Origin: Octopus sinensis
Lineage: Eukaryota
Direction of reading: 5' to 3'
DNA length: 64,000 bases
Assembly: GCF_006345805.1 (NCBI RefSeq)
Contig: NC_043003.1
Location: 103,416,001-103,480,000, forward strand
The notes below the pieces were generated by a model. The model saw nothing but the letters and a program-made list of their open reading frames with translations. It made no database searches and had not been told where the DNA came from. Positions 6,001 to 58,205 of this stretch are shown here, in pieces. The stretch's first letter is position 1, and every line of letters starts with the position of its first letter. The position numbers were made by a program, and so were the translations under genes.

Positions 6001-9000
6001 GTCGGAGCTGATAAAGAACTAAGTAAAGCGGCAATAATTGAAGGAAAAAAAGAGAAAAAAGAAAAAGAAGAAAAAGCAAAAAGAGAAAAGAAAGAAATGA
6101 AAGAAAAAGAGAAACGAGAAAAGAAAGAAATGAAAGAAAAAGAAAAACAGGAAAAGAAAGAGAAGAAAGAAATGGAGAAAAGAGAAAAGCTAATGAAAAA
6201 AGAGAAGGAAAAGCAAGAAAAGATAGAGAGAAAGTTGCGGGAAAAAATGAAAAAAGAAGGAAAAGTTGAGGCAGAAATAATAGAGGAAAATAGGAAGGAA
6301 AATGAAGAAGCGAAGATTGAAGAGACAGAAATCAGAACAACTGACATTGTAGAAGAAAGAAAGAATGAAGGAGTAGAAAATATAGATGGAATAAATCTGG
6401 AAAATAGGGAAGAAAAAATAGAAAAGATGTCGGTCGTGAAGATGGAAGAATCTAGAAAAACAGAAGAAACTCCTGCTTTTGTCGAAAACAAAGAGAAGAC
6501 AATTAAGGAAGGGGAATTGTGGAAAATGGCATCGATCTTTGAGAGAACGAATGAGAAGGACTTTCAGGAAAAACAAACTGAAGAAGTACTGGTCGTGGAT
6601 GGAAAGGAGGGAAAGGAAAGGAAAGAAGAGAAAGCTGAGGTACTGTCAGTAGCAGAAAGAAAGAGAGAGAAAGGTAAAATAGAAGAAAAATCTAAAGACG
6701 TTTTGGTCGATAAAGGTAAAGAATTGAAGAAAGTTGAAGTCATCGAAGGAAATGAAGAAAATAAAATGAAAGAAAGAGAAAGTAAAGAGATTTCTGCGGT
6801 TGAAAGAAAGAGGGAGAAAAATGAAAAAGAAGAAAAGTACGAAGAAAAACAGGTCTTTGAAGAAAAGAAGGAAGAACTAAGAAATGAAGAAAAAACCGAA
6901 GAAGTGTTAATCGTTCGTGACGAGAAGAAAATAGAGCTAGGAGACAAAATGGAAAGGATATCATCGGTCGCTGACGTAAAGGAGAAACAGGCGAAGATAA
7001 TGAAAGAAATGAAGATTGAAGATGAGGCTGAGGGAGAAGGTGAAGGTAAAGTAGACAGGGAACGGGAGAAAATGAGTGGAAATGAACTTGTAAATTTGGA
7101 AAAGGAATCAGAAGTTATGGGGAATAAAGAGAGAAATAACAAGGAGGAGATAACTATGGATAAGAGAGAGAAGCATGATCAACAGCAGTTGTCACTTAAG
7201 GATCGTAATGAGGAGGAGGAAGAGGAGGAGTTTTACGACAGTGTGGACATATCACCACGGGAAAGTGCAAACGAACTCCCTGCTGAATTGCGTGAACAGA
7301 ACGATAATCTCAAGCCTAACGAGAGTTCAGTTAAAGCGCAGGATTTAGAATCGGTGACACCTCCTTCTTCAACTGAGTCACTGAAGGAATTGAAAAGTCC
7401 CTGTTCAGATAAAGATGGCACTCTGAGCAACATTCAAGAGAGTATTGCTGCTGCTGCTGTTGATGTCACTAAAGATATAGACATAGCAAAACAAGTAACG
7501 GAAACAGCAAGTAGTTCGTTACCGGATATTTCTGTGGCGTCATCTACTTCGGAAAATGACGGCTTCAAGGAACAAAGTACTAACAACAACAATATAGACG
7601 ATAGAGAAACTATGTTATCACAGCGTAACAGTAAACAAGACAGTAGTGGTTCAGATATTACTGATATAGCTCTAGCGAAGCAGGAAGAGGCTAAAGATAA
7701 CGATATCACAAGCATCAGTAAAGAAGTAAGAGCTACAACAGCAACAACAACAGCAGCAACAAAAACAACAGTCACAACAACAGTAGCAAAAATCGATGGA
7801 ACAGATCTTCAATCCAATGAAATTGAAGAGACTATTGATACCTCAGATTCAACAAATATCTTGAACACTGGACAAAACAAATATGTACCTCCTCAGCGTG
7901 AAAGCTGTGAAGATATGTCGTTAGCAGATACTAGTGCTTCGAGCGGAAATGAGAAAATAAGCTATGAAAAACCAACAGAACATAAGATCTCTACAAACAT
8001 GGAGGATGATGTTAAGGAAATTAGTTTTCCTGATAAAGTCGAAAACAACAGAGAAATTGTTTTGTTAGCTTCAGATAGTGAAGCTGAAATGACCGTCCCT
8101 GCTGAGAGTAGATCTGAAGAACAGTTGCAGAGTGCAGTTTGTGAAAACGCAAAACTAAACAATGACGAAATATTAGTACAACCTATTGTTGATGAATCGA
8201 AAGAAATTTCTCCCAGTATTTCAACGACTGATGACACTAAAGATGAAGTTGTTGCATCGACACAAGCAAACAACGTGTCGTCTGATTTAGTCGAAAAAGG
8301 TATACCTCATACGACGATTGAAAGTAACGAAGAAGAGGAGAAAACTCAAGCCACACCCACCAAAAGTGGTGTTCTTTATGCTGTTGATGCTCTAAAGAGA
8401 ATGTTTGGCTTTTCTTCGAGTGAAGAACTTGAAACATGTGACAAGAATAAAGAATGTATAATCACAAGTGAAGCCAGTGACAACAGGCAGCAATTGGATG
8501 GCAAAAAGGATAGTGTGTGTCACGATGAGGATAATATTTCTGTAGAAGTCGCGAAAGGAATCAATGAACGGGATACACCAGAAAATAAGGATTCCAAAGA
8601 CTCTGAAGTTGAATATTTTGACAAGAACGACGGAAGTGATAAAACTGATACATATTTAGAAGAACAAATATCACTTCAGCCAACGTCTATGGAAGATAAG
8701 AAAGAAGATATAAACAAAGCAAATAAAGACATTGAGATCGAATCTTCAAAAGAGGAAACCGGTGAAATGAAACACAGCGAGGATATTGTTAGTTCTGAAG
8801 GGAAAGATAGAATTATTCCTTGTGATGAAATAATACAGGTGTCGGAAGACGGAGATCATGCCAGCAGCGAAGACACAACAGATCAAGAAAGTAGCTCAGA
8901 ATCTTCAAAATCGGTAGAAGAATCAAACAGTGAAATAAGTGAACCAGATTCTGCAGAAAGTTCAGGAATTATTGCTGCAGATTTAGAAGAACTGCCTCCG

Positions 9001-12000
9001 TTTTCTCCTCAACAAACATCAGAGGAGAGAAATCTTGAAGATAGCGACGAAAAAGTCTTCAATGAGGAAGACCAGAAAGACACATCTCATGAAGAGTCAA
9101 AAGAATTTATAACCACTGAAGAGGGGGAAACAGAGCTCGAATTGTCGCCAGTTATTTCTAAGATTGATAACTTAGAAGATGGCTGCATCGAAAACACGGT
9201 CGAAATTACAGTCGTTACAGATGAAGATTTGTCCGGTGACTTGTTGCCGGAATCAGATATTCTCAAAAATGAAGAAGATGCAAGGGCTCAGTCAGTGGAC
9301 ACTGATGTTGACGCAGAATTTATTGTGACATCTTCTGGGTCCTCAGATATTGTAACACCAGAAGAGAATCTTGAATCTAAAATTAAAAGAAAGCCACCAG
9401 TTCCACTACCAAGAACAACTTCCAAGTCAGAAGCAAAGGATTCTAACAAGGAATCAGAATCATCTGAAGAAATCGAAGATTTAATAGACGCGGAATCAAT
9501 GAATGATTATACGGAAGATGGACAAACTTCAGTAGAAAGTAAAAGTAAAAAACCAGTTCCTTTACCAAGAAGTGGTGTTAAAGCGGCTGAAACGGTAAAA
9601 GAATCACCTGAAACTGACGAATCTATAGAGGAACAGTTCAGAGATCTTTCGAGCAGATTTAACATGTTGCCACCAGAAATGGGTGAGAAACTAAATTTCA
9701 AAAAGAAACCTCCAAAGTTACCGCCAAAATCTAAACTTAGTGGTGAACCAAATAGCACCGAAGAAATTAATTCTTGCGATGAGGAATCTGAAAATAATGA
9801 TTCTGAAGAAATTAAAGATATCAAAAGCAGATTAAGTATGTTGCCAGCAGAAATGGGTTTCAAACTTAATTTTAAGAAGAAAACTCCACCGCCACCACCA
9901 TCGAAACTTGCAACAAAAGAAGATAAGGCAGGTGAAATACCTGAAGCTGAAAGTGACGCTCATAATGAGGAAGAGAAGTTAATTGAAAATATAGAGATAA
10001 AGGAACAGGACAATAAAATCGAACCAATATGTTCTGGCACTGAAGACGCTGATGATGCACAAATGGATCTAAAACGAAGAATGAGTATGCTATCGGCAGA
10101 AATGGGAGTTGAAATTAATTTGAGGAAGAAAAGCCCTCCAAGTCCAGCACCAAAGGTAAAAAGGAGCGATAATTCAATTAACGCGGAAGAAAATAAATTA
10201 ATTGAAGGCGACAAAGGCTCTGAAAGTATTGACGGGTTGGAGCAAGTTTCTGATAACATCAATAATACGGACGATTCAGACGAACAATCAATGGATTTAA
10301 AAAGTCGGCTAAATAAATTATCTAACGAGATGGGAACTCAAGTAACTCTGAAGAAATCAGCCCCGGTACCGCCACCTAAATTTACCAAAGACAAAACGAA
10401 ATTACAATCGGAAGATGATGAAGAAGAAATGGATTTGAAGTCACGAATGAATAAACTTTCTTCAGAGATGGGTACTGAAATTAATTTAAAGAAAACCAAA
10501 AAACCCCCAGTGCCTTTACCAAAGACTGCAGCGGCAAAGATCAATAGTGTGACGGAGGTAGAGTCAAAAGATCCAGAGGAAAGTGGGGAGACCTCTTGTA
10601 CATTCGTTATTTCTACAAGTATTAATGACGTAGAATGTGATGAATCAGGTAGTTTTACGTTTGTAATCAACAGTGATGCTACGGAAGATCAAACCGTATT
10701 TGCAGTCAGCGATAGCTCTGGAACAAAATCTGAAACAACTACAGACGGTGACGTAAAAACAGCCGATAGCAGCGCAAATAAAGCAGAAGGTGATGATGAG
10801 AACTCTAACAGTTTTACTTTTACAATCAATGAAGTGGCTGATAGTGATCAACCGAATTCTTATGACATCACTATATGTCCTACAGAAACAAATGAGGCCC
10901 CAGTGGTGGAAGAGAAGAAACCAGAACCGGAAGTTAAAAAAGAATTAACCGCCGAAGAGAAGACTAAAGAGAGGTTAAAGAGAATATCGGAGATGCTGGA
11001 GGAGGAACGGAAGAAGCCGAAGGAGAGTGCTGTTGACGCCATGAAACGGAGGTTAAGTGGAAGTTTTCTGCAAGAGGAAGTAAAAGTCGATCCTGTCAAA
11101 AGGAGAAGCAGTCTTACCAGTAAACCGGCACCGAAAAAACTTGGCAATTTAGGAAATTTACAGAAGAAATTTGGCGCTGCCAATGCACCTGGAATTGACT
11201 TTGATTCTATGAAACGAAGATATGGTCTGTTACCAGCTAAAGACAGTGTCAAAAAGACGGCACCAGTTGAAAAGAAAGACAATAAACTATCTAAAGGTAA
11301 AGATTCGTCCGCTAAAAACGAAAATGTTGCTGTTGAAACCGAAACGAAAAATGCTGCCGAACCTTGTCCGATGACAACAGAAGACCAAGGAGACAAAACC
11401 AAAAATGCTGAAGTTAAGGTTGACCAAACAGATGGAACTGTTGGAATCGATGTAATCGAAGAAAAAGTAAGCGATAAAGGTAAGGAAGACGTAAATGAAA
11501 AGAGTAAAGTGGAAATGATCGATAGAGGCGAGGAGAAAGTTATCGATAAAGAAAAAACAGCTGATATACCTGAGAGTGGGGACAAACAGACGACTGTAGA
11601 AAAGAATGCCGATGACTTAAAATCTTCAAAAGAGATTATTGAACCGGAAGACAGTTCTAAAGAACTGAAGGCTGTTTCGTCTGAGCTCGATCGTAAAGAT
11701 AGTATTGATTCGAAAGAATTATCAAACCAGAAACGAGAAATCCCAGACGCTCTGGAAGAAACCGAATGTAAACCTGGTGTTAGTTTACAGAAATCTGATG
11801 AAGAAAAAATTATCGATAAAATTTCTGAAGTTAAAAGTCAGTCTAGTTCCGAAGAATTAAGCATTCAAAAACCTTTGTCTGTTACTGAAAGTACCGAAGA
11901 TGTCTCTAAAGTAGAAACCAAAGAGTCTCGGAAACTGGAGAATTCAGAAAAGCTTTCAAAGGCTCTTGAAAGTTCTTCAGATCTTAACAGGGATCAAAAC

Positions 12001-17316: not shown

Positions 17317-17425
17317 GTGAGTATTCGTTTATCGTGATTTTTATGAGACAGATATATTTACATATATATATACATTTACATATGCATATATATACATATG
17401 TATGCATGTATGTATGTATGTATGT

Positions 17426-17960: not shown

Positions 17961-18359
17961 GGCCGAGCTAAATCCAGCATTCAGCCTTCTGGTGTGAAAT
18001 CTTCGTTGGTCTGTGTGTCATTTATTTCGGTAAATCTTCCACACGGCACAATCTCTCTTCTTCGCCATCATTACTCTCGCCTTCATTTTCTCACCCCTTT
18101 TTTTTTCCCTCACATCTAAACATATACACATACACATGCGTGCACATGCACACATAAACACATAGACACACAAATACGCGCTAACACACACATACAAACT
18201 GATCAAAACATACGCACACGCACACACACATACACATACACATACGCACATATACGCACATGTGCGCTGTATGTATATACATATACATATATGTGTGTGT
18301 GTGTACATACAAATATACATGCAATTATATATAGATATACATATATATACACACACAAG

Positions 18360-18844
18360 CACATACATACATGCATACATACATTCATACATACATACAT
18401 TCATACATACGTGCATACATACATACATTCATACATACATACATACATGCATTCATACATACATACATACATACATACATACATACATACATACATACAT
18501 ACATACATTCATACATACATGCATACATACATACATACATACATACATTCATACATACATGCATACATACATACATACATTCATACATACATACATACAT
18601 TCATACATACATGCATTCATACATACATACATACATACATACATACATACATACATACATACATTCATACATACATGCATACATACATACATACATACAT
18701 TCATACATACATACATACATTCATACATACATGCATACATACATACATACATACATACATACATACATACATACATACATACATACATACATACATACAT
18801 ACATTCATACATACATACATACATACATACATACATACATACAT
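18360..18844. repeat. (CATA)n microsatellite with CATT/CATG variants
   Basis: Seen directly. Confidence 0.97.
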
Positions 18845-19139
18845 AGAAGAATATATGAGCAACCATATATATGTGTATGTGCGTAGCTAATCACGAGTGA
18901 GGTGCAACAAAGTCCCAGAATTCTCCACCAAATCTAAAAGAAGGTCAATCGGTAAATTCTTAATTTTTACCATTTATTCCCTGCACAATTCCAATCCTCC
19001 TCAGCATGATTGTTCTTTAGTACAAGCATATTACACGCTATATATTTTCCACACACACTTGTCCCGGACGGCAGGCACCGATCCCTCAGTAGTGGTGGTA
19101 GTAGTAGTAGTAGCAGTAGTAGTAGTAGTAGTAGTAGTT

Positions 19140-24908: not shown

Positions 24909-25371
24909 GTGGATGTACTCTTGCATACGAGTGTGTGTCTGTAGGCATGTTTATACTCTTGTGCGAAAGAGTGCATGTATGTGGTATGTATGCGTGCGCT
25001 TGCGTGTATATGTATGAGTGTGTGAGAGTGTGAATGTGCATGCGTGTGCGTGTGAGTGTTTGTGTGCGTGTTGTGTGTGTTTGTGTGTATGTTTGTGCGT
25101 GTGTGTGTGTGTGTGCGCGTAAACTATTGCAAACGGTAATTACAAATGTCAACTGAAATTTGAAACCTTGCATAAAGTGCGTGTCACGTGCCGTAGGCGA
25201 TATTCGATCTCGCAATTTATGCTCAACTAATCAAAGCAATATGGCCAAAACCAAAATACAATTAGAGAGAGAGAGAAGGGGGGGGGTAGACAGGCAGACA
25301 GGCAGGCAGGCAGGCAGATGGACGGTTGGTGGGTGAGTTGGTGGGTGGCTGATGAGTGGGTGGGTGTTTGG

Positions 25372-25872
<501 letters not shown>

Positions 25873-28800
25873 TTTTTCTTTATTAGCCACACAGGGCTGC
25901 ACACAGATAGAACAAATTACAAGGTAGAGCTTTTCTTTTGGGGGTAAAAAAAAGGGAGTGGTGGTTTTCGATCAAAAGGGATCGTAAAAGGAAAGAAAGA
26001 GGACTAAAAAAAAAGGGAGGGGTTAATAAAAAAAAAAAAAGGTGGGGGGAGAGCAAAAAAATTGATCAATAGGGATCGTTATCACAGAAATATCAATATG
26101 AAGTGTAAAGGGGAGAACAGGTGAGGTTTACCCGTGGAAAGAAAAGCCTACGGAAAAGACCACGGTAACCTCGGTCAATGAAGTCACATGTTATATTTCT
26201 TTTTTTTTTTGCAAATAAGCAACTCTCTGTATTAATTTTTACGGTTCATAGAATCATAGTCAAGGTGGCTTCGTCATTCATACGTGCCATCCTTGCTACA
26301 TTCACCCATCTTTTTTTAAAACATTCACTAGACAAAACTTGCCTCTCTACTCTCACTTTCCTCTCTACTCTCACTTTCCTCTTCAAGTGATACTTGAAGA
26401 AGTTGATGAGAGATTGACCAGAGAGGAAAGTGTTTGTCTCTAATCCTTTCAGGCGCGTCCACCAGATACATTCTTTCGCCATAGCCACAAGTATGATAAA
26501 AATAGCTCTTCCTTCCCGTTTGAAGGAAGGAGGCGTGACGATATTAACGATAGACTCGGCTGATAAACCGACACGTCCCACACGTGACAGCAGTCGTTCG
26601 ACATAAGCCCACAGGTCGGAAATTGCTGGACACTGCACGATTGCGTGCAGAGCGGTTTCGTCGCTCTGCCCGCATCTCGGGCAGGTCGGCCCCGTGTTTC
26701 TCGAGCCATGCCTATAGAGCTTATCCCCACGGGTAGCGCTTCTCGGTAGCACCGCCAGGCCAGGGATCTCTGGAAGTTGTCCATAGGTCCCGGGCCGAAA
26801 GTCGTTTGAAACAGGCGGGTCAGGTATTCCTCGTCGACGCCCAGGTTTGCCCCGAGCTCGTCGTCGTACCTCCCCTCCACTAATCCCCTATAGAATGCTT
26901 TGGTTGTGTTGAAGTCACTCAAGGTCGACCCGGGACGGCAGAGTTGCTTGAGAGCAACGCGACACTCGCGGTGCCATTCGCCCTTACTCGGCCTCTTTTT
27001 GATCCACGACTGTAGTTCGGTCATGGAGACGAGTTGCGGGAATGCGTGCCTCACAAACGGCGACCACACCTGTTCACCGTCGTCTACATAGAGCCGGAGA
27101 TGTCGCAGTCTCAGCGCGTGTCTGCGCATCATCAACCACGGCATGCCCAGCCCTCCTTTTAACGGGTGTTGACAGCAAATGGATCGCCTGACCATCGGGA
27201 CGCATCCTTTCCACAAGAAGCAGAAGAGAATGCGTTCTAGTTTGGTGATGGCAGGGTCGGGACAAGGTACGACGGTCAGGCGGTAGTAGATGATGGACGC
27301 GATGTACGCGTTCACAACCTCCGCCCGACCTTTTAGGGACAGTTTCCTCTCGGCCCATTGCTGGGCGAGAGTGACTACCCCACTCGTTATCTCGTTCCAG
27401 TTCTTCTCCATTTGGAGGTCCGGACCGAACCAGACCCCGAGCAACTCAACCGGGCCGTCTGTCCAGCGTCCCACGACGGAGGTACTGGTGGACGGCATGG
27501 GCTTGCTTCTCCAGGTGCCGAGCCGCAAGCCCACTGACTTTTCCCGGTTGATTTTTGCTCCTGTCACCGCTTCGTAGTCTTTCAGTGTCTCGCCGACCCG
27601 CTCGATGTGCTCGTGGCTTGACACTATGACGGTGACGTCGTCCGCGTATGCAGACACGCTCGTCCCGCATCCCAATTCTCGCGGGATGCCCCTTAGAGTC
27701 GCCAGCTTCCGCAGTAGTGGCTCAAGAGTCAATACGTATAGAAGCGCCGAGAGGGGGCATCCCTGACGGACCGAACGTGCAATGTCGAAAGGTCTCGATA
27801 GATGTCCATTTACGCGAATTACCGAACGGATGCCTCTGTACAAGGCAGCTATCCAGCCGCGGAAGACGGGACCGAAACCAGCCGCTCTCAGGACTGCCTC
27901 CAAGTATCGATGGTCTACCCTATCAAAGGCTTTCGATTGATCCAAGTTGATCAGGGCCCCACCCATGCCAGGTTCGTTAACTACTCTGTCTATGATGTAG
28001 CGCATCAGATGGAGGTTGTCATGGATGCTCCGGCCCGGCACGGCGCACGTTTGTGCGTTGTCGACCAGTTTCTCGATGTCAAGCGCCAACCTCTTGGCTA
28101 ACACCTTTGTCAAAATTTTCAGGTCTGCATTCAGCAGCGTGATTGGTCTAAAGTTATCTATAATGTTTCCCTTGTTTGGATCTTTCTTCAGCAGAGTTAC
28201 AGCTCCTCGACTCACAAAACCGGGTATGCTCCCGTTTTGCTGCCAGTTGCAGTATACCGCTGCCAAGACGTCTCCAAACAAGTCTGGCATACAATTGTAA
28301 AACTCGTAGGGTAGACCATCCAAACCCGGTGATTTGTCCCTCGAGCATTCTGCTATCGCTTCCTGCACTTCCGCCGCCGTGATGGCACCTTCGCAGCACC
28401 CTGCCTTTCTTGTCGAGAGTCGTGGCAGGCTATGTAGGTAGGCACTGAAGTCCACCCTACGTTCTTGCCCTCCACTCGTCCCGAACAGTCGGGCAAAATG
28501 CTGCTGAAAGGCCTCACACATTTTACTTGGCTCGAGCAATTCGCGCCCCTGTTCACCTACCAGTGACCGAATGGTGGCTTTGTTGCCCTGTTGCGCCTCT
28601 GCCACCCGGGCCTCTCTCGCGGCTCCAACACCTTCGTTCCTTAGAGCACGCATCCTAGCTCTGACAGCACATCCTTCGTGTTTGGCGTTGAAGTGTTGGT
28701 CGAGGGCCAACCTCGCCGCCAAAACGTCGGATGCGATGCCGCTTCTAATTGCCTCTTCTAGCTTCTTAACTAGCTCACCCTCTACTCTATTTCTATCTAT

Positions 28801-29351
28801 GGCTAGTGCTTTGCTGTACCTAATCGCTTCTGCTTTTACTGCTCTCTTGAGGGCAAACCACCATTTGTTGTTGATGATGGCTCCCGTCAAAGCCCTCTTT
28901 ACTAGTCTCTGAAAACTTGTCTGGACGGGAATGAGGCGTTCAGTTTCCAGTACCCAGGACCCTGTCTATGTGCCTTATCTAAGTCTAGCGTACACGTCAC
29001 CAATTTGTGATCCGTGTAGCTGACTGTGTGGAATTGTGGACATCCTAAGTTATCCTTGTCTACTGTCCTACACAGTATCCTATCTAGATACGATCTCGAC
29101 GACCCACTGCGGTTGCTCCATGTCCACGTTGGTGCATTTGGGTGGTCGAGTCGGTACCTGTCAGACAGTTGGAATCGTCTGAGCAGGTCTCTGAGACATT
29201 TGCATCCCCTTCTGTTTCTGTCTCTACCCACGTAGTCTACATGCGTGTCCAAGGTAGCATTCCAATCCCCCACTAAGAGTAAAGGACGAGACGTTCCCAA
29301 GAATACTTCTAGACGTCGAAAGAAATCCGCCCGACCTGTTAAGGGCGGGTG
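25873..29351 (-). mobile_element. Tx1/L1-clade non-LTR retrotransposon, copy 1; 5'-truncated inside the endonuclease, with complete 3' UTR
   Basis: APE endonuclease motifs ([21 protein letters not shown]); RT motifs (SPGLDGLPYEFY, FRPITLLNAD, LDQSKAFDRV, VRQGCPLS, YADD); C-terminal CPRC..H...C knuckle; 3' end AATAAAG followed directly by (TCTA)n. Confidence 0.93.
26246..29340 (-). pseudogene. LINE ORF2 (APE-RT-zinc knuckle) broken by two frameshifts (about 28900 and about 26745), with an 18-bp internal duplication (RKVRVE twice)
   Basis: ORF pieces 28902-29300, 26449-28890 and 26246-26752. Copy 3 reads EALPVRDKLY through the site where copy 1 lacks 1 nt. Confidence 0.9.
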
Positions 29352-30440: not shown

Positions 30441-31498
30441 GTTTCTTTATTAGCCACACAGGGCTGCACACAGATAGAACAAATTACAAGGTAGAGCTTT
30501 TCTTTTGAAGGTATTAAAAAAAAAAAAAAAAAAAAAAAAAGGAAGGGGGAGGTTCGATCAAAGGGATCGTAAAAGGAGAGAAAGAGGACAAAAATAAGGG
30601 GGGTTAAAAAAAAAAAAAAAAAAAAAAAGGGGGGTGAGAGGAAAAAAAATGATCAATAGGGATCGTTATCACAGAAATGTCAATATGAAGTGTAAAGGGG
30701 AGGACAGGTGAGGTTTACCCGTGGAAAGAAAAGCCTACGGAAAAGACCACGGTAACCTCGGTCAATGAAGTCACATTTTATATTTCTTTTTTTTTTTTTT
30801 TTTTTTGCAAATAAGCAACTCTCTGTTTTGGATTTCTGGGTTCATAGGACTATGCTCAAGGTGGCTTCGTCATTCATACGTGCCATTCTTGCTACATTCA
30901 CCCATCTTTTTTTAAAACATTCGCTAGACAAAACTTGCCTCTCTACTCTCACTTTCCTTTTCAAGTGGTACTTGAAGAAGTTGATGAGAGATTGACCAGA
31001 GAGGAAAGTGTTTGTCTCCAATCCTTTCAGACGCGTCCACCAGATACATTCTTTCGCCATAGCCACAAGGATGATGAAAATAGCTCTTCCTTCCCGTTTG
31101 AAGGAAGGAGGCGTGACAATATTGACGATAGACTCAGCTGATAAACCGACTCGTCCCACACGTGACAGCAGTTGTTCGACATAAGCCCACAGGTCGGAAA
31201 TTGTTGGACACTGAACGAGTGCGTGCAGAACGGTTTCGTCGCTCTGACCGCATCTCGGGCAGGTCGGCCCCGTGTTTCTCGAGCCGTGTCTGTAGAGCTT
31301 ATCCCGAACGGGTAGCGCTTCTCGGTAGCACTGCCAGGCCAGGGATCTCTGGAAGTTGTCCATGGGCCCTGGCCCGAAAGTCGTCCCGAACAGGCGGGTC
31401 AGGTACTCCTCGTCGACGTCCAGGTTCGCCCCGAGCTCGTCGTCGTACCTCCCCTCCACTAAACCCCTATAGAATGCTTTGGTTGTGTTGAAGTCACT
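30441..31498 (-). mobile_element. Tx1-like LINE copy 3, about 1.06 kb, 5'-truncated
   Basis: Collinear with 25873-26918 (3' UTR plus zinc-knuckle end of ORF2); (GATA)n on both sides. Confidence 0.92.
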
Positions 31499-31526
31499 AG
31501 ATAGATAGATAGATAGATAGATAGAC

Positions 31527-31633
<107 letters not shown>

Positions 31634-32411
31634 CATGTATACATGCATATATGTATATATATTAAATAAACATATACACATTTTCATACACACGCATCCA
31701 CACACACGCATCCACACACATACATACACACACACACACACACACGTACACACACACATACAGACGAGCGTGCATATATATATCAGGCAATACAAACATA
31801 CACATATCAGGTGAAAAAGGAGCTGCTCAGAAAATATTCTCCGACTGGTAGCCAATGATACATACCTATGGAAATTTCATAGTTTACCGCAACATAGCAA
31901 CGCACCAATGAAAAAAATATGCTAAAATGTTGTTGATGAAACCGCAATAAAAAGTAAGGAAAACCGACCAGACATCATAATTTGGGACAGAGTAAAGAGA
32001 ATATGAACAATGCAGGTAATATGTTAAGTTAATGTTGATGATTATTGGAAAACGAACACATCTACAGGATGCAGCCAAAAAACGATACAATATTTTACAG
32101 GCTGACAAATGTTTCAACAAAAAACACGTGATGTGCACGAGCCCAAACTCTGTAAAAAATCATAAACTAGTCGCTACAGGAAGACCCCGTTACCACCTAC
32201 CTAATTTCACTCGGGTTATACAAAGAGTCGTTTAAAATATGGGAGATGTTTTCTGCCGCACACTGTGTGTTGAATTAATGAGAAATATATAGATATACAA
32301 CACGAACTAAAGCTATTGGGGAATTTGAAGATGCAACTAACTGCTTCAGTATCAATCTTGCAAAGCTTGGCTTCACATCACCAGTACGAACACGACTAAT
32401 TACAGAAACAA

Positions 32412-39987: not shown

Positions 39988-41303
39988 GATTTACACATAT
40001 ATATATATATGAAATTCTATATTGCACTCTTTTGTCTTCAAACTTTCGGGGCTGACTGAAATGTAATAAATATTCGAAAATGTGTCCTTGCTTACGACGA
40101 TGCGTCTGTGTGTCTGTGTGTGTGTTTGTGTGTCTGTGTGCCTGTGTGTGTGTTTGTGTGTCTGTGTGCCTGTGTGTGTGAGTGTGTGCCTGTGTGTGTG
40201 CATGCGTGTGAATCTGTGTGTAGGTGTATGTATGTATGAATGTATACCGTGTTATGTGGTGGCGATTTCAAAAGACGTTATGCAAACCACCTATCTTCTT
40301 TCCGGCACATTGACAAAAGTAAAACCACTAAGTTGGCTAGCCAAGTTCGGGGTTTCAAGACCAACTCCACGCCACATACAACCAAGTAGAAAATCGTAGA
40401 TTTATTTTTCAAAGTAAAGGATAACACATTTACACATACACACATATGTATATGTTTGCACATTCTTCGAGATATGCATGTGTGTGCGTGTGTGTGTGTG
40501 TATGTGTGTATGTGTGTGTGTATGTGTGTGTGTGTGTCACTGTGTGGTTAGAAGTTTGCTACACTATAGCCCCGTGCCGACCGAGCTTTGCGAATGGAAT
40601 TTTGTAGATGGAAACTGAAAGAAGCTCGTCGCGTATGTACTTGAGGCTTTGTGTTTTGATATGTATGTATGAATGCTTGTATATACTTGAATTTGATAAA
40701 CATACATTTAGCACCACGGTGTCTATAGAACTTTTTGGAGAGTTGTCTGCAGAACGGAATGAGCCACAACTCGGCTGACTTCACGATACTTATGAAAAGA
40801 TAGATAAATCGAGAGAGAGAGACGGCGGGGGGGAGAAAGTGGGGAGAGAGCCGCAGATAAAACTGCAGGTGTGCAGCTATGTGCATACAACTATAATTAC
40901 ATACGCACACCCTTACCTGCATACATGCATAGACACATACGTACATACGTACGCACATACATATATCCAGACGTACATACATGCATACACACACATATAT
41001 ACATACAAACATGCATACATACACACGCACATATATATATATGTATGTACTTGTATGTATATGTGTGTATATGTGTGTGTGTGCATACATGCATACACAC
41101 ACATATATACATACAAACATGCATACATACACACACACATATATATATATGTATGTATGTACATGTATGTATATGTGTGTGTATATGTGTGTGTGCATAT
41201 GTGTGTGCATACATATATAATCACATACACATGCATACATACATACATACATACATACATACATACATACATACATACATACATACATACATACATACAA
41301 ACG

Positions 41304-41335
<32 letters not shown>

Positions 41336-41699
41336 TACGTACATATGTACCGAATTACGATTATTTTCTTTCCCTTCATCCAAAGAAGAATGACAAAGAA
41401 ACGCCGATTTTTTCCGGCAAAATGGCGCTGCTTACAACAATAGAAAAATTCCTGACATCTCAGCCAATATCAAAGATATTAATACAGTGGATACGCCAAA
41501 CTCTGGAAGTGACCTGAATGTCAATCACACTAAAGAATACAATTCCGAAAGAGGGACTCAAACGGACAGTTTTCGAAAGGATCAGGTGGGCCTGTTTCAC
41601 TGGATTCGATATAATACAAATGGCGACAAGTAAATAATTGAGCACGCATCGTGCCACCTACTGAAAAATAATAAGATAGACATATTTATCGGTTCCTGT

Positions 41700-51652: not shown

Positions 51653-54600
51653 GATACTTTAGAACACAAGTTAGACTCGACAGACAAGCATTTCCAGGCA
51701 AAAGACGAAGATACTGAAAGAATTAAAACAAGTCTTTCCGTTTCAAAAGATGAGTGCGCAAAAGATGACAACCGTCTGTCTCAGAAATATGGAGCAGAAA
51801 AAGTTGAGAGTTTGGAGGAAGTTAATGGTTCAAGCAGTTACCAAACAGAAAAAGAAATGGAAGAGAAGAAAAAAGATATTTATATGTCAAGTGTTGACAG
51901 AAGTAAAGATTTGATTGAAGGAAAAGAAATAATAAAGCCAATAGACCGTTCGGTAGAAGGGGATATAGCTAAACTGAGGAAGGATGATATCGATAAAATT
52001 AGGCGTTTCACTGAAGCAGACGATAAAAAAGTAGACGATAAAATAACGAAACATGCTGATGATAGAGAAAATATCTGTGAAACCCGTTCGAGAGAGCAAA
52101 TTACCGGCCTTAATGAGAGAATTAGTGTAGTGAAACCAGTGGCGATTGAAATAAAGAAAGATCACGTTAATGAAGACGTTGGTCGTTCTCGCAATGACGT
52201 CAGCACCAGTGAAAGCAATAATAACAAGTTTTATTTGGTAGCAGATGAGAAAATATCTGTGATTAAAACAGGTGATAAGATAGAGAAGACAATACATTCA
52301 ACAGATGTCGTCCGTTTAGAACCTATTCAGAGATTTTCTGCAAATGAAAACACCTGTTCGTTAGAATTTGGTCAAAGTGTACAGCTTCTGACAATGCCTG
52401 CTCCATTAATCAGAAAAGAAGTTTCGAAGAAAGGGGACTCTGGTGATACCAACACAACTAGTTCTCAAGTTGAAGTCGGTAAATGTATCAAAATTGTGAA
52501 AAGGCCAGCTTTCGATCAGAAGCCAACCGAACATTTAGAAAAACAACATAAAGAAACGGAGAAGACAACAGGCAAACCTCCAATCGATACAAGCAAAGAT
52601 TTAGCAAAAATTAATTCTTCCAAATCGACTGAAAAAGCTGAAGTAGAAAAATACGAATCAAAGAAGGATGCAACTTCTGCTGAATTGAGTAACAATCTCC
52701 TTAAAACTGACAAGACGAGCTCGACAAAAGGAAATATAGATCTTCCTAAAGTAGAACTTCACGAGACTAAGATGGATGTTCGCCAAAAAGAAGATATCCT
52801 TCTAACTAAGATAGACAAACATGACATAAAAGAAAAGAACCAATCAACAAAAGTTGATCTTGCCCTGTCTAAGGAAGATATTTTCGAAACTAAAACAAGA
52901 ACTGAGAAAAAGGAAGGCGACATTCTTGAAGGTAAGAAAGAGCGCGGTGAGTTAGGGGACATTTATGAAACAAAACACATACTTCCAAAGGACGAAGACA
53001 TTTTAATCTCTAAAAAAGACAATTATGAGATAAAGAAAGATGAGTATTCGACAAGCAAGGATAGCAGTATTCGTACAGTAGAGAGCAATGAATCAAAGAA
53101 GGATAGATTTTCTATAAATGAGAACAGCAATAAACCCAACAAAAATCAATTTGCAAGTGTTGGTGACATTCTTCAGAGTGAAGTAGACATCTCCGAAAAG
53201 AAAAGACAGAAACCTCCTTCTGACGAAGCTGCCCATCAATCCGATGACAAACACTTGATAGATGAGAAAGCTCAGATTCCTAAAGGTGAGAGTCCTGGCA
53301 CAAAGGAGAAAGACCATCCAAAGGGACAAGACAGTCTCCGGTCGAATTTGAACAATGTTAGCATGAAAGTCGAGAAGCATTTTGAAAACAAGGACATTCT
53401 TTTATCTAAAGCAGACATCTACGAAACTAAGCACGTTTGCCCTGAATCAATGGTGAATAAGGATGCCAAAAAGGAGGACATTTCTCTGTCTATCACGAAA
53501 AAAGATAAACCATTCGCAGGACAGGACAGTACTGAAACAAAGATGTTAGAACATCTTGAATCTAAGGTAAACATTCTTGAAACTAAGAAAATTGTGCATC
53601 CAACGGACGAGGAGAGTTGTCTGTCAAAAGGCGGCAAAGATAAACTCTCAACAAACAAAGACACTTACCTGTCAAAGGTAGATAGTAATAAAACCGTAAA
53701 AGATAGCAGCAGTATCTCTAAGGAAAACACATCTGAAGAAAATAAACCTGTGGACAGGTGTGAGACAGAAGACGGTTCAAACGAAACCAGAAGTAAGATT
53801 TCTACAGACATAGACAGAATTGACATGTATGAAACAAAGCATCGTATAGTTGAAGATAATCATTCCTCTGAAGTAGGCACTGGCGTAACGATAAATGACA
53901 AGCAACACGGTCGTCTGTATAAAGGAGACAGCTTTGAAATAAAGGAAAGTGAGGTAATTACAAAAGAAAGCATTCAGCCAGCCAAGAAAGACACAGCTGA
54001 AGAGAAGAGGCCTACAGAGAGACACAGTCGTCTGTACAAAGGAGACAGCTTTGAAATAAAGGAAAGTGAGGTAATTACAAAAGAAAGCATTCAGCCAGAC
54101 AAGAAAGACACGGCTGAAGAGAAGAGGCCTACAGACAGAGACAGTCGTCTGTATAAAGGAGACAGCTTTGAAATAAAGGAAAGTGAGGTAATTACAAAAG
54201 AAAGCATTCAGCCAGCCAAGAAAGACACAGCTGAAGAGAAGAGGCCTACAGAGAGACACAGTCGTCTGTATAAAGGAGACAGCTTTGAAATAAAGGAAAG
54301 TGAGGTAATTACAAAAGAAAGCATTCAGCCAGCCAAGAAAGACACAGCTGAAGAGAAGAGGCCTACAGACAGAGACAGTCGTCTGTATAAAGGAGACAGC
54401 TTTGAAATAAAGGAAAGTGAGGTAATTACAAAAGAAAGCATTCAGCCAGCCAAGAAAGACACAGCTGAAGAGAAGAGGCCTACAGAGAGACACAGTCGTC
54501 TGTATAAAGGAGACAGCTTTGAAATAAAGGAAAGTGAGGTAATTACAAAAGAAAGCATTCAGCCAGCCAAGAAAGACACAGCTGAAGAGAAGAGGCCTAC

Positions 54601-57600
54601 AGACAGAGACAGTCGTCTGTATAAAGGAGACAGCTTTGAAATAAAGGAAAGTGACAAATACAAAAGAAAGCATTCAGCCAGCCAAGAAAGACACAGCTGA
54701 AGAGAAGAGGCCTACAGAGAGACACAGTCGTCTGTATAAAGGAGACAGCTTTGAAATAAAGGAAAGTGAGGTAATTACAAAAGAAAGCATTCAGCCAGCC
54801 AAGAAAGACACAGCTGAAGAGAAGAGGCCTACAGACAGAGACAGTCGTCTGTATAAAGGAGACAGCTTTGAAATAAAGGAAAGTGACATAATTACAAAAG
54901 AAAGCATTCAGCCAGCCAAGAAAGACACAGCTGAAGAGAAGAGGCCTACAGAGAGACACAGTCGTCTGTATAAAGGAGACAGCTTTGAAATAAAGGAAAG
55001 TGACATAATTACAAAAGAAAGCATTCAGCCAGCCAAGAAAGACACAGCTGAAGAGAAGAGGCCTACAGACAGAGACAGTCGTCTGTATAAAGGAGACAGC
55101 TTTGAAATAAAGGAAAGTGAGGTAATTACAAAAGAAAGCATTCAGCCAGCCAAGAAAGACACAGCTGAAGAGAAGAGGCCTACAGAGAGACACAGTCGTC
55201 TGTATAAAGGAGACAGCTTTGAAATAAAGGAAAGTGACATAATTACAAAAGAAAGCATTCAGCCAGCCAAGAAAGACACAGCTGAAGAGAAGAGGCCTAC
55301 AGAGAGACACAGTCGTCTGTATAAAGGAGACAGCTTTGAAATAAAGGAAAGTGAGGTAATTACAAAAGAAAGCATTCAGCCAGCCAAGAAAGACACAGCT
55401 GAAGAGAAGAGGCCTACAGAGAGACACAGTCGTCTGTATAAAGGAGACAGCTTTGAAATAAAGGAAAGTGACATAATTACAAAAGAAAGCATTCAGCCAG
55501 CCAAGAAAGACACAGCTGAAGAGAAGAGGCCTACAGAGAGACACAGTCGTCTGTATAAAGGAGACAGCTTTGAAATAAAGGAAAGTGAGGTAATTACAAA
55601 AGAAAGCATTCAGCCAGCCAAGAAAGACACAGCTGAAGAGAAGAGGCCTACAGAGAGACACAGTCGTCTGTATAAAGGAGACAGCTTTGAAATAAAGGAA
55701 AGTGACATAATTACAAAAGAAAGCATTCAGCCAGCCAAGAAAGACACAGCTGAAGAGAAGAGGCCTACAGAGAGACACAGTCGTCTGTATAAAGGAGACA
55801 GCTTTGAAATAAAGGAAAGTGACATAATTACAAAAGAAAGCATTCAGCCAGCCAAGAAAGACACAGCTGAAGAGAAGAGGCCTACAGACAGAGACAGTCA
55901 TCTATATAAAGGAGACAGCTTTGAAATAAAGGAAAGTGACATAATTACAAAAGAAAGCATTCAGCCAGCCAAGAAAGACACAGCTGAAGAGAAGAGGCCT
56001 ACAGAGAGACACAGTCGTCTGTATAAAGGAGACAGCTTTGAAATAAAGGAAAGTGACATAATTACAAAAGAAAGCATTCAGCCAGCCAAGAAAGACACAG
56101 CTGAAGAGAAGAGGCCTACAGAGAGACACAGTCGTCTGTACAAAGGAGACAGCTTTGAAATAAAGGAAAGTGACATAATTACAAAAGAAAGCATTCAGCC
56201 AGCCAAGAAAGACACAGCTGAAGAGAAGAGGCCTACAGACAGAGACAGTCGTCTGTATAAAGGAGACAGCTTTGAAATAAAGGAAAGTGACATAATTACA
56301 AAAGAAAGCATTCAGCCAGCCAAGAAAGACACGGCTGAAGAGAAGAGGCCTACAGAGAGACACTGTCGTCTGTATAAAGGAGACAGCTTTGAAATAAAGG
56401 AAAGTGACATAATTACAAAAGAAAGCATTCAGCCAGCCAAGAAAGACACAGCTGAAGAGAAGAGGCCTACAGAGAGACACAGTCGTCTGTCTAAAGGAGA
56501 CAGCTTTGAAATAAAGGAAAGTGACATAATTACAAAAGAAAGCATTCAGCCAGCCAAGAAGGACACAGCTGAAGAGAAGAGGCCTACAGACAGAGACAGT
56601 CGTCTGTATAAAGGAGACAGCTTTGAAATAAAGGAAAGTGACATAATTACAAAAGAAAGCATTCAGCCAGCCAAGAAAGACACGGCTGAAGAGAAGAGGT
56701 CTACAGTGAGGGACAGTCGCCTATTTAAATTATACAATGCTGGAGTAATGGAAGACAACAGGCCTGCTGATTCTTATAAGTTAGGTGACAATAAATCGGT
56801 GAATGATGAAAATCGTGATGTCTATGTGAGTAAATCTTCGTCCAAGGATGACAGCATGGAAAGAGAAATAAAAGAGATAAGAAATTCGTCAGGAGAGAAT
56901 ACACTTAGCACTACTACGAGAGATAATAATTCAGTCCTGCGGGATAGTGCTCTAAGAAAAGTAGACAGTTATGAGACATTGCTGTTTCCACAAGAAAGTG
57001 ATGACAATAAATTTGGAAATGAAACCGATATGAATGAATTGAAGAAAGATAAATATTCGACAGTCGAAGATATTTATAGTTCTGGAGTGAACAGACACGA
57101 AACTATGATAGATAACTGTCCAACGGATGTAGACAGTTATCTATCAGAAATTACTTCCTTTACAGATAAACAAGGACATGGGGATACGAGGGGACCTATG
57201 ACCTCGTCTGTAATGGACGGCTTTGAAATAAAGCCGTCTAAAAAGGAACAAGTTTCACTATCTGACGTGGACAGATTTGAAACTAGTACGCATGCTCAGC
57301 CATCAACTGAACAAAGTCGCACTTTTAGGGTTAGCAGTTATGAGCCGGGCGTTGAATTAGAATGGGTTTCTGTTGATGATGATATCTCCTATGAAACAAC
57401 GAACGACAAAACTTCAAGATATGAAGAAATTTATGCATCAAAAGAAGATAGCAAGGAAACAAATCTAGAAGACGACTTTTTCTCTCAGATGGAAGGCCAT
57501 GATTTAAATAAAGACCCTTTGAGACGAACTGAAGAAGACTTTTATCTACGAAGAGGAAGGAATGTCTGTACCAAGGGCAAAGTATATGACATCGAGGAGC

Positions 57601-57731
57601 ACAGAGAGCCATATCAAATAAATGACACAGATGATAGTCTGGAAGACATAGTTAAGATCCAAAGTAACCAGGTAGAAGACAGCAGATACGAAAGAGCTCT
57701 TAATGACGATGAACATCAAATTGATTACAAG
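51653..57731 (+). CDS. Second giant exon (about 2027 codons once a 2-nt frameshift near 54658 is repaired), containing a 39-aa tandem repeat array
   Basis: Acceptor ttttttccccag|GAT is in frame with ORF 51812-54700. ORF 54651-57749 continues the same repeat. Donor AAG|GTAAGT at 57731/57732 is phase 0. Confidence 0.85.
53911..56718 (+). repeat. Coding tandem array, 24 x 117 bp (RLYKGDSFEIKES[EV/DI]ITKESIQPAKKDTAEEKRPT[ERH/DRD]S)
   Basis: Unit starts at 53911 and 54028 are 117 bp apart. The two ORF translations give 6 + 18 units. Units are near-identical. Confidence 0.97.
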
Positions 57732-58205
57732 GTAAGTATTGAAAAGTAAATTGCGTTTTTTTTATTATTCCTAGAGAAAGAGATAGCGAGGGATAAAGAA
57801 GGGAGATAACGGAGGAAGTTGTTGTTAGAGAGTTGGTTATTGTTGTTGTAGCTAGAGTTGGTTGTTGGATGGAGGAGTTAGTTGTGTTAGGTAGCTGTGG
57901 TAATGCGATGCATTAAGCCAACCAACCAAGAAATCAAAGCGTAAAAAAGCCGGGGCAAATTTCGCAGGGAATTTCTTCCAACGTTATAATAATTCCACCT
58001 ACTCAACACTCGGAAACCGATAGTTTATCTTATCGACCACGAAAATACGAACAGTAAAGCTGACCGAGACGACATTTGAATTCGAATGCATTGAAATGCA
58101 ATGGCCAACTACTAGGCCAATTCGCAATACGGAATTCAAATCTTCCTGTGGATTGTATCTAGCTAGTACAGAGGTTATATAAACACACACACACACACAC
58201 ATACA

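Follow-up and report, generated by a model that had tools for sequence, protein, structure and literature searches.

WH2 modules consist of an N-terminal amphipathic helix of two to three turns, which occupies G-actin's hydrophobic barbed-end cleft, and of a C-terminal LKKV motif, and they are disordered until bound (PMC8102491). The SH3 domains of CIN85 and CD2AP recognize an atypical PxxxPR consensus in which the Arg is critical, the site of SLP65 being PSPLPR (PMC3181483). The element described here has points in common with both systems. It lies in a stretch of 64,000 nucleotides of Octopus sinensis (assembly GCF_006345805.1, contig NC_043003.1, positions 103,416,001 to 103,480,000 of the forward strand; hereafter the window), inside a giant open reading frame (ORF), and is a cassette of five tandem modules in which a predicted helical segment precedes a proline-rich one. 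A sequence-only reading had taken the modules as WH2-like and the cassette as one that binds or nucleates actin.

The proposal we make is that the cassette is a coleoid-specific tandem array of a two-part linear motif acting as a multivalent docking platform, to which we attach a probability of roughly 0.55. It is the conserved spacing of the prolines, together with flanking lysines that fit SH3-ligand patterns, that leads us to this reading.

Results

Layout of the cassette

The ORF extends from nucleotide (nt) 1 to nt 17337 of the forward strand, with a first ATG at nt 25 and a stop at 17335-17337; it comprises 5770 codons, and its product is rich in E, S, K and D. The five modules, of about 35-44 residues each, cover nt 9619-10545. 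Their core motifs begin at nt 9637, 9811, 10063, 10291 and 10429 (amino acids (aa) 3205, 3263, 3347, 3423 and 3469), exactly where the sequence-only reading had placed them, and each is followed directly by the proline motif that it had quoted; the two additional PVPLPR motifs it had reported upstream are likewise present, at aa 3125 (nt 9397) and aa 3177 (nt 9553). The residues D, R, L, E-M-G, K, P and P are invariant in the five octopus copies, which are spaced 46-83 residues from start to start. All seven PxxP-type motifs of the 5770-aa ORF are confined to aa 3125-3502, that is within 380 residues, and the proline content is 9.0% in the cassette against 3.3% in the remainder of the ORF. In the list below, all on the forward strand, scores are those obtained with a hidden Markov model (HMM) of cuttlefish modules only, and helices are those predicted by AlphaFold2 (AF2).

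9397-9414, forward strand: proline-only half-module 1, (KIKRKP)PVPLPR, aa 3125-3130; fits PxxxPR and is similar to a module's C-terminal half
9553-9570, forward strand: proline-only half-module 2, (SKSKK)PVPLPR, aa 3177-3182
9619-9750, forward strand: module 1, aa 3199-3242; 49.3 bits; predicted helix aa 3198-3213
9793-9924, forward strand: module 2, aa 3257-3300; 59.2 bits; predicted helix aa 3258-3271
10042-10176, forward strand: module 3, aa 3340-3384; 36.0 bits; predicted helix aa 3342-3354
10270-10401, forward strand: module 4, aa 3416-3459; 44.0 bits; fits a WH2-type regular expression
10408-10545, forward strand: module 5, aa 3462-3507; 47.7 bits; fits a WH2-type regular expression

Conservation, age and selection

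The HMM was built from the six cuttlefish modules without any octopus sequence and is hence independent. It recovers exactly five sites in octopus, with 36-59 bits and independent E-values of 1e-11 to 1e-18, against a best domain of 2.0 bits in 200 shuffles of the ORF, and this recovery argues that the modules are not due to chance. No tandem repeat is detected by Tandem Repeats Finder in the DNA at the cassette. The pairwise DNA identity of the octopus copies is 48-68%, with non-synonymous divergence (dN) of 0.28-0.66 and synonymous divergence (dS) above 1.2 or saturated; the low DNA identity and the saturated dS identify them as ancient duplicates kept alike at the protein level and not as the outcome of a recent duplication.

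Comparison with Octopus bimaculoides gives a dN/dS of 0.045 for the module cores (dN 0.005, dS 0.11), 0.14 for whole modules and 0.82 for the spacers, the values for the rest of the ORF and for the entire alignment being 0.585 and 0.57. Purifying selection is concentrated on the module cores. The amino-acid identity between the two Octopus species is 96.9% in the modules (100% in module 4), 87% in the spacers and 89.9% elsewhere.

At larger distance, a 6840-aa octopus composite was compared, with SEG masking of low complexity and composition correction, with the 5483-aa ORF of the cuttlefish Sepia pharaonis and with the ORFs of the assembly ERZ21867824. The sole significant alignments with either decapodiform sequence fall at window aa 3191-3602, which corresponds to the cassette and its immediate downstream flank. 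The sequence-only reading had called the array the most conserved-looking element of the protein, and this holds within the genus and between octopus and cuttlefish alike; the cuttlefish-only HMM, the dN/dS values and the alignments agree that the modules are conserved in the orthologues, contrary to the lack of conservation that the sequence-only reading had named as refuting it. Six modules are present in the Sepia pharaonis ORF, six in the ERZ21867824 contig and five in O. bimaculoides. The global alignment is collinear, octopus modules 1-5 pairing with cuttlefish modules 1, 2, 4, 5 and 6, and individual pairs reach identities of up to 74-77% (77% for module 2 of both), so that the array must already have existed in the common ancestor of octopus and cuttlefish. 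Their split lies roughly a quarter of a billion years back.

When 1.84 billion representative proteins were searched exhaustively with the module profile, six matches were obtained. Three are cephalopod: O. bimaculoides XP_052825376.1, Sepia pharaonis CAE1306168.1 and a 167-aa fragment from ERZ21867824. The other three are bacterial proteins of the leucine-rich repeat (LRR)-Roc type, which score 36-40 bits through LxxLPxEIGxL over 4-9 short stretches. Within this search the module is restricted to cephalopods.

Consensus and predicted structure of the module

The consensus of 14 modules reads, after an acidic run, Phi-x-D-L-K-S-R-[FLM]-[NS]-x-L-P-x-E-M-G-x-K-[LIV]-N-[FLY]-K-K-K-P-P-V-P-x-P-K, where Phi stands for a hydrophobic residue. 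E, G, KK and P...P are invariant throughout, the lysine cluster is conserved with aromatic or aliphatic residues on its flanks, and the helix segment has a heptad-like pattern, Phi-x-x-L-x-x-x-Phi-x-x-L. The AF2 model of module 5 alone, calculated from an 11-module alignment, has a helix at residues 2-20 followed by coil (mean predicted local distance difference test (pLDDT) 70.9). In the model of a 436-aa cassette, values of pLDDT above 50 are confined to the helices of the five modules and a few short, scattered segments; the helices of modules 4 and 5 lie at aa 3425-3436 and aa 3471-3481, and the 10-residue blocks of the module 1 helix have pLDDT means of 83 and 71. In the Pro-containing octopus modules 1-3 the predicted helix ends before L-P, and P-E-M forms a single turn. 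Local helices of this kind, predicted within disorder, may mark a motif that folds when it binds.

Immediately downstream of the array, and further 3', lie elements that recur in cuttlefish:

10651-10836, forward strand: downstream flank with two acidic plus [ST]F[TV]F[TV]I strand-like motifs, SFTFVINSD (aa 3543-3551) and SFTFTINEV (aa 3596-3604)
11029-11277, forward strand: helix-only half-modules, aa 3669-3681 and aa 3726-3751, including MKRRLSGSF and MKRRYGLLP

The acidic and strand-like region as a whole spans window 10597-10836 (aa 3525-3604), directly 3' of the last module. In cuttlefish the corresponding motifs TFVFTIVSD and VFVFTLCDE follow the last module in the same order as in octopus, and the octopus motifs are modelled as strands by AF2 with low confidence. 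Further [ST]F[TV]F[TV]I-like motifs occur at aa 4721 and 4743. The cuttlefish region that corresponds to the helix-only half-modules carries IEVMKRRLSLLTPPTQPKPKVKK, also helix-only (...MKRRLSLLTPP...); with 81% identity it is the best-conserved segment between the two decapodiform sequences. The existence of helix-only and proline-only half-modules apart from each other argues for two separable binding elements and suggests that the two halves of the module are separable units. Some of the helix-only half-modules contain an RRxS kinase-type site.

Several known domains and motifs were considered and rejected. SARAH (PF11629) scored 12.8-12.9 bits against a cut-off of 23.1, in modules 3 and 5 only, and Caskin-Pro-rich (PF16907) 15 bits against 29.1, in module 2 only. 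By eye, neither RPEL, the AP2 beta-ear motif [DE]xxFxx[FL]xxxR, the TRAF6 motif PxExx and the B56 motif LxxIxE, nor 14-3-3 and PKA sites, calmodulin 1-5-10, the dynein light chain TQT and PP1 RVxF motifs fit all or most of the copies.

Tests of WH2 membership

In searches with Pfam WH2 (PF02205) and Thymosin (PF01290), the comparison that the sequence-only reading had called for, neither the 382-aa cassette nor any of seven single modules, five from octopus and two from cuttlefish, gave a match at E<=10. Control WH2 peptides were recognized by Pfam WH2 with 48 bits (WIP), 35 (WASP), 38 and 37 (N-WASP), 38 (WAVE2), 41 (MIM) and 52 (Vrp1), and thymosin beta-4 scored 82 bits with Thymosin and 14 bits with WH2; the control sequences are confirmed by these matches. 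The module profile searched against all PDB chains at E<=10 gave two unrelated matches and no WH2 chain, and hhalign of the 14-module alignment to an alignment of seven WH2 sequences gave a probability of 0.4% with three aligned columns (LKK).

A regular expression of the type used by ELM, requiring LKK[TV] 4-7 residues past the last hydrophobic residue of a Pro-free helix, catches all eight controls. It matches octopus modules 4 and 5 only (two of five) and none of the six cuttlefish modules, and shuffled versions of the ORF contain 4.1 +/- 2.2 matches. A Pro stands directly after the last Leu of the helix, inside the would-be WH2 helix, in 10 of the 14 modules. As to an N-terminal helix of WH2 type, one is predicted by AF2 in every module, and its amphipathicity, judged by the hydrophobic moment, is average. 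The features that define WH2 (the L of LKK, T or V after KK, a Pro-free helix) are variable and are combined only in octopus modules 4 and 5. The WH2-like look is thus derived, belonging to two octopus copies and not to the conserved core. The modules do not belong to WH2 by sequence. What stands of the WH2-like cassette is thus a set of real, selected tandem modules, each with a predicted helix that leads into a basic Phi-K-K segment and then into prolines; membership of the WH2/beta-thymosin family does not.

Likeness to SH3 ligands

In the proline half of the 14 modules the last Pro is invariant, a Pro four residues earlier is present in 13, K follows in 11, and KKK precedes. This consensus spacing and the flanking basic residue fit the PxxxPR/PxxP patterns of SH3 ligands, and the two octopus half-modules are exact PxPxPR. 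To this extent the sequence-only reading of the proline motifs as SH3 ligands is supported, PVPLPR fitting the PxxxPR of CIN85/CD2AP. The basic residue after the last Pro is K (or is replaced by S, A or E) in full modules, and R occurs only in the two octopus-specific half-modules.

The host gene and the rest of the window

Nucleotide 1 of the window lies within the open frame, which places the start of the exon upstream of the window. Over 4633 aa the 5770-aa ORF shares 89% identity with the O. bimaculoides protein XP_052825376.1 ('uncharacterized protein LOC106867396, partial'); the latter is a single uninterrupted ORF that has 1070 extra residues upstream and stops at an assembly N-gap, so that the exon codes for at least about 6,840 residues. 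No Pfam domain was found in the 5770-aa ORF at E<=10, and the 1075-aa upstream portion of its O. bimaculoides orthologue contains no real domain either. Acanthosepion (Sepia) pharaonis CAE1306168.1 ('unnamed protein product', 1203 aa) is a fragment of an uninterrupted ORF of 5483 codons. In the ERZ21867824 contig, from a decapodiform-like assembly of the European Nucleotide Archive (ENA), the six modules are spread over three frames, and the frame changes occur at KKK/PPP homopolymer runs, as is typical of assembly errors. The public annotations of the gene in octopus, cuttlefish and ENA are fragmentary, and a search of the literature for the gene and for studies of cephalopods, giant exons or WH2 returned nothing relevant.

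The giant protein contains a lysine/glutamate repeat at window 6046-6189 (aa 2008-2055), which we take to resemble the KKEE-type repeats of MAP1B, and a K/E/R-rich stretch similar to it is found at the end of the cuttlefish ORF. It also contains FFAT-like motifs with acidic tracts at window 7228-7248 (aa 2402-2408) and 8611-8631 (aa 2863-2869); the upstream part of the O. bimaculoides orthologue carries FFAT-like DDDDDDDDNEFFDIEEP and DLEFYDSVE (aa 831 and aa 854), and none was found in the pieces of decapodiform sequence retrieved. Judged by these motifs, the octopus protein may dock to VAP at the endoplasmic reticulum (ER).

A second very large open frame, at window 51812-57749 on the forward strand, carries about 30 near-identical tandem repeats of 38 aa (RLYKGDSFEIKESEVITKESIQPAKKDTAEEKRPTERHS) and is read in two frames, with a switch near nt 54650-54700 for which a genuine frameshift, a misassembly of the repeat or the junction of two exons may be responsible. 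Pfam found no real domains in it; the scores of DUF1419 and DUF3964 on the 38-aa repeats, in which no single stretch is above threshold, are artefacts of summation. An ORF for a reverse transcriptase of a LINE-like (long interspersed nuclear element) retroelement lies at window 26449-28890 on the reverse strand (RVT_1, 110 bits), in a block with a GC fraction of 0.49-0.52 against about 0.37, and a related fragment lies at 30842-31855. Long microsatellites of the ACATAT/TATACA type occupy window 17348-17399, 18262-18890, 25227-25904 and 40548-41443; they are intergenic or intronic and yield spurious IYLS/HTYI 'ORFs'.

Discussion

The docking platform that we favour combines two contacts in each module and the repetition of the module along the chain. 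Within a giant, disordered and otherwise fast-evolving protein, each module presents an acidic lead-in, a predicted helix of 12-16 residues (Phi-x-D-L-K-S-R-Phi-x-x-L) that is probably formed only upon binding, a conserved P-x-E-M-G turn, a short extended basic segment x-K-Phi-N-Phi-K-K-K and a polyproline-II stretch P-P-V-P-x-P-K. Five to six such modules are carried on non-conserved, flexible and acidic spacers of 2-80 residues. The proline half would act as an SH3 ligand of the PxxxP[KR]/PxxPxK type, as in adaptors associated with actin of the CD2AP/CIN85 or cortactin kind, and the helix half would provide a second contact, either on the same partner or on a second protein. The repetition would result in avidity or clustering, through the recruitment of several copies or several domains of one partner. 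What we infer here is that SH3 domains are bound, that the array serves multivalency and that the helix folds as it binds.

Several observations weigh against this proposal. The hydrophobic moment of the helices is unremarkable, from the 0.8th to the 97th percentile of the 12-mers of the ORF and mostly between the 46th and the 89th, the confidence of the AF2 models is moderate and the alignments behind them are shallow. Full modules carry K in place of the Arg described as critical in the CIN85/CD2AP consensus (PMC3181483), and the exact PVPLPR motifs are octopus-only, with no proline-only half-module of this kind found in the cuttlefish ORF. The orthologues compared form a small set, drawn from two species of Octopus, one of Sepia and one decapodiform-like assembly.

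Could the modules be functional analogues of WH2 in spite of their sequence? Each would then take up a single actin monomer, its helix lodged in the cleft that separates subdomains 1 and 3 and its Phi-K-K lying along the monomer, and the tandem copies together with their prolines would serve to sequester, deliver or nucleate actin in the manner of Spire and Cobl. Tandem arrays near proline-rich stretches are typical of actin regulators, and WH2 motifs are degenerate enough for HMMs to miss real ones; the predicted helix followed by an extended basic segment speaks for the same reading, as do octopus modules 4 and 5, which align without gaps to LLxxIxxGxxLKKT and satisfy the regular expression. 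The general architecture also agrees with the published definition of WH2 (PMC8102491). We nevertheless regard this reading as unlikely. Pfam found no match at E<=10 where the controls scored 35-52 and 82 bits, no WH2 chain of the PDB was matched and hhalign remained at 0.4%; the regular expression is satisfied by no cuttlefish module of six and by two octopus modules of five, where shuffling alone gives 4.1 +/- 2.2 matches; the would-be helix contains Pro in 10 of 14 modules, the predicted end of the helix before this Pro in octopus modules 1-3 leaves a linker to Phi-K-K of about 9 residues instead of the 4-7 of the regular expression, and the invariant residues E, G, KK and P...P are not determinants of WH2. 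More speculative, and in our view somewhat less probable again, is an independently evolved, coleoid-specific class of G-actin-binding module, a WH2 analogue that has Pro-x-Glu-Met-Gly as its turn and to which an SH3-ligand tail is fused; the array of 5-6 modules would then be a machine for actin nucleation or monomer delivery on a scaffold of more than 6,800 residues, whose FFAT-like motifs could couple actin assembly to ER contact sites.

The partner of the modules might instead be a membrane, the helix and Phi-N-Phi-K-K-K inserting into acidic phospholipids, the repeats tethering the giant protein and the prolines recruiting SH3 proteins. The conserved lysine cluster between aromatic and aliphatic residues, the helix that is predicted only locally and the FFAT-like motifs, which suggest a biology of organelle contacts, are in keeping with this idea. 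It is made improbable by the strongly acidic spacers, which would repel acidic membranes, by the hydrophobic moment, which is not exceptional, and by the invariant polar residues D, S, R, E and G, which with the acidic lead-in point to the recognition of a specific protein. As to an array devoid of specific function, be it low complexity or a recent repeat, a chance motif or the degenerate remnant of a leucine-rich repeat, it could be argued that further tandem repeats occur in the host protein, whose composition is biased, and that the profile weakly matches bacterial LRR proteins through LxxLPxEIGxL. This reading is effectively refuted by the dN/dS of 0.045 in the cores against 0.82 in the spacers, by the saturated dS between the copies, by the conservation of the modules across the octopus-cuttlefish split when all else is unalignable, and by shuffles that reach only 2.0 bits. 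The LRR matches amount to 36-40 bits over 4-9 short stretches, Pfam has no LRR in the cassette, and an LRR solenoid cannot form from single units separated by disordered spacers. We reject the leucine-rich repeat as the identity of the module: no Pfam LRR is found at E<=10, the scores come only from summed weak repeats, and we judge the resemblance to be one of chance.

Giant disordered proteins are hard to annotate since almost nothing in them aligns between species, and here a single island of about 400 residues has withstood the divergence of octopus and cuttlefish. Its modular grammar (helix, EMG turn, KKK, polyproline II) offers a direct experimental handle on an opaque cephalopod-restricted gene. 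If the partner of the docking platform is actin or an SH3 adaptor linked to actin, the protein would be a lineage-specific organiser of the cytoskeleton; cephalopods are known for the novel cell biology of their nervous system and skin. If the partner is not linked to actin, a new class of linear motif is still defined. The 'WH2-like' resemblance, for its part, fails in HMM, profile and cross-species tests.

Compared with the described systems, the module shares with WH2 and beta-thymosin repeats (Spire, Cobl, N-WASP, ciboulot) a short disordered unit in which a helix precedes an extended basic Phi-K-K, the tandem copies, the proline-rich stretches nearby and, in octopus modules 4 and 5, an LSxEMGTxxxLKK[ST] that aligns without gaps to LLxxIxxGxxLKK[TV]. 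It differs from them in that the modules have no HMM, PDB or profile-profile similarity to the family. Pro-x-Glu-Met-Gly stands at the place of the WH2 helix and linker, Phi-K-K-K-P-P replaces L-K-K-[TV], the helix lies further N-terminal and bears a conserved D-L-K-S-R signature absent from WH2, and every module has a proline stretch fused directly at its C-terminus. In the LRR of bacterial Roc-COR proteins (LxxLPxEIGxLxxL), LSSLPPEIGQLxNL resembles some 13 residues of the module, but the octopus units are isolated from each other by disordered, non-conserved spacers, at 46-83 residues from start to start. Ligands of class I or II with Lys, of the +PPxPxKP form known from the SH3 domains of cortactin and Abp1, are a further point of comparison, K-K-K-P-P-V-P-x-P-K being readable as +xxPxxP or PxxPx+ in several modules, although the commonest form, PPVPLPK, has its basic residue one position beyond the canonical class II register. 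The arrays of ligands for the triple-SH3 proteins CIN85 and CD2AP, in SLP65/BLNK and Cbl, likewise display several P-x-x-x-P-[KR] motifs along a disordered chain; in the modules the last Pro is invariant, the Pro four residues earlier nearly so, and a basic residue flanks them, and the upstream PVPLPR of octopus is close to the PSPLPR of SLP65 (PMC3181483). In contrast to these arrays, the modules have Lys, and their proline motif is joined to a helix-turn-basic element, itself conserved, for which the known CIN85 ligands offer no equivalent. No described family matches the module, and the general class to which it belongs, that of tandem linear motifs in disordered scaffolds, is a familiar one.

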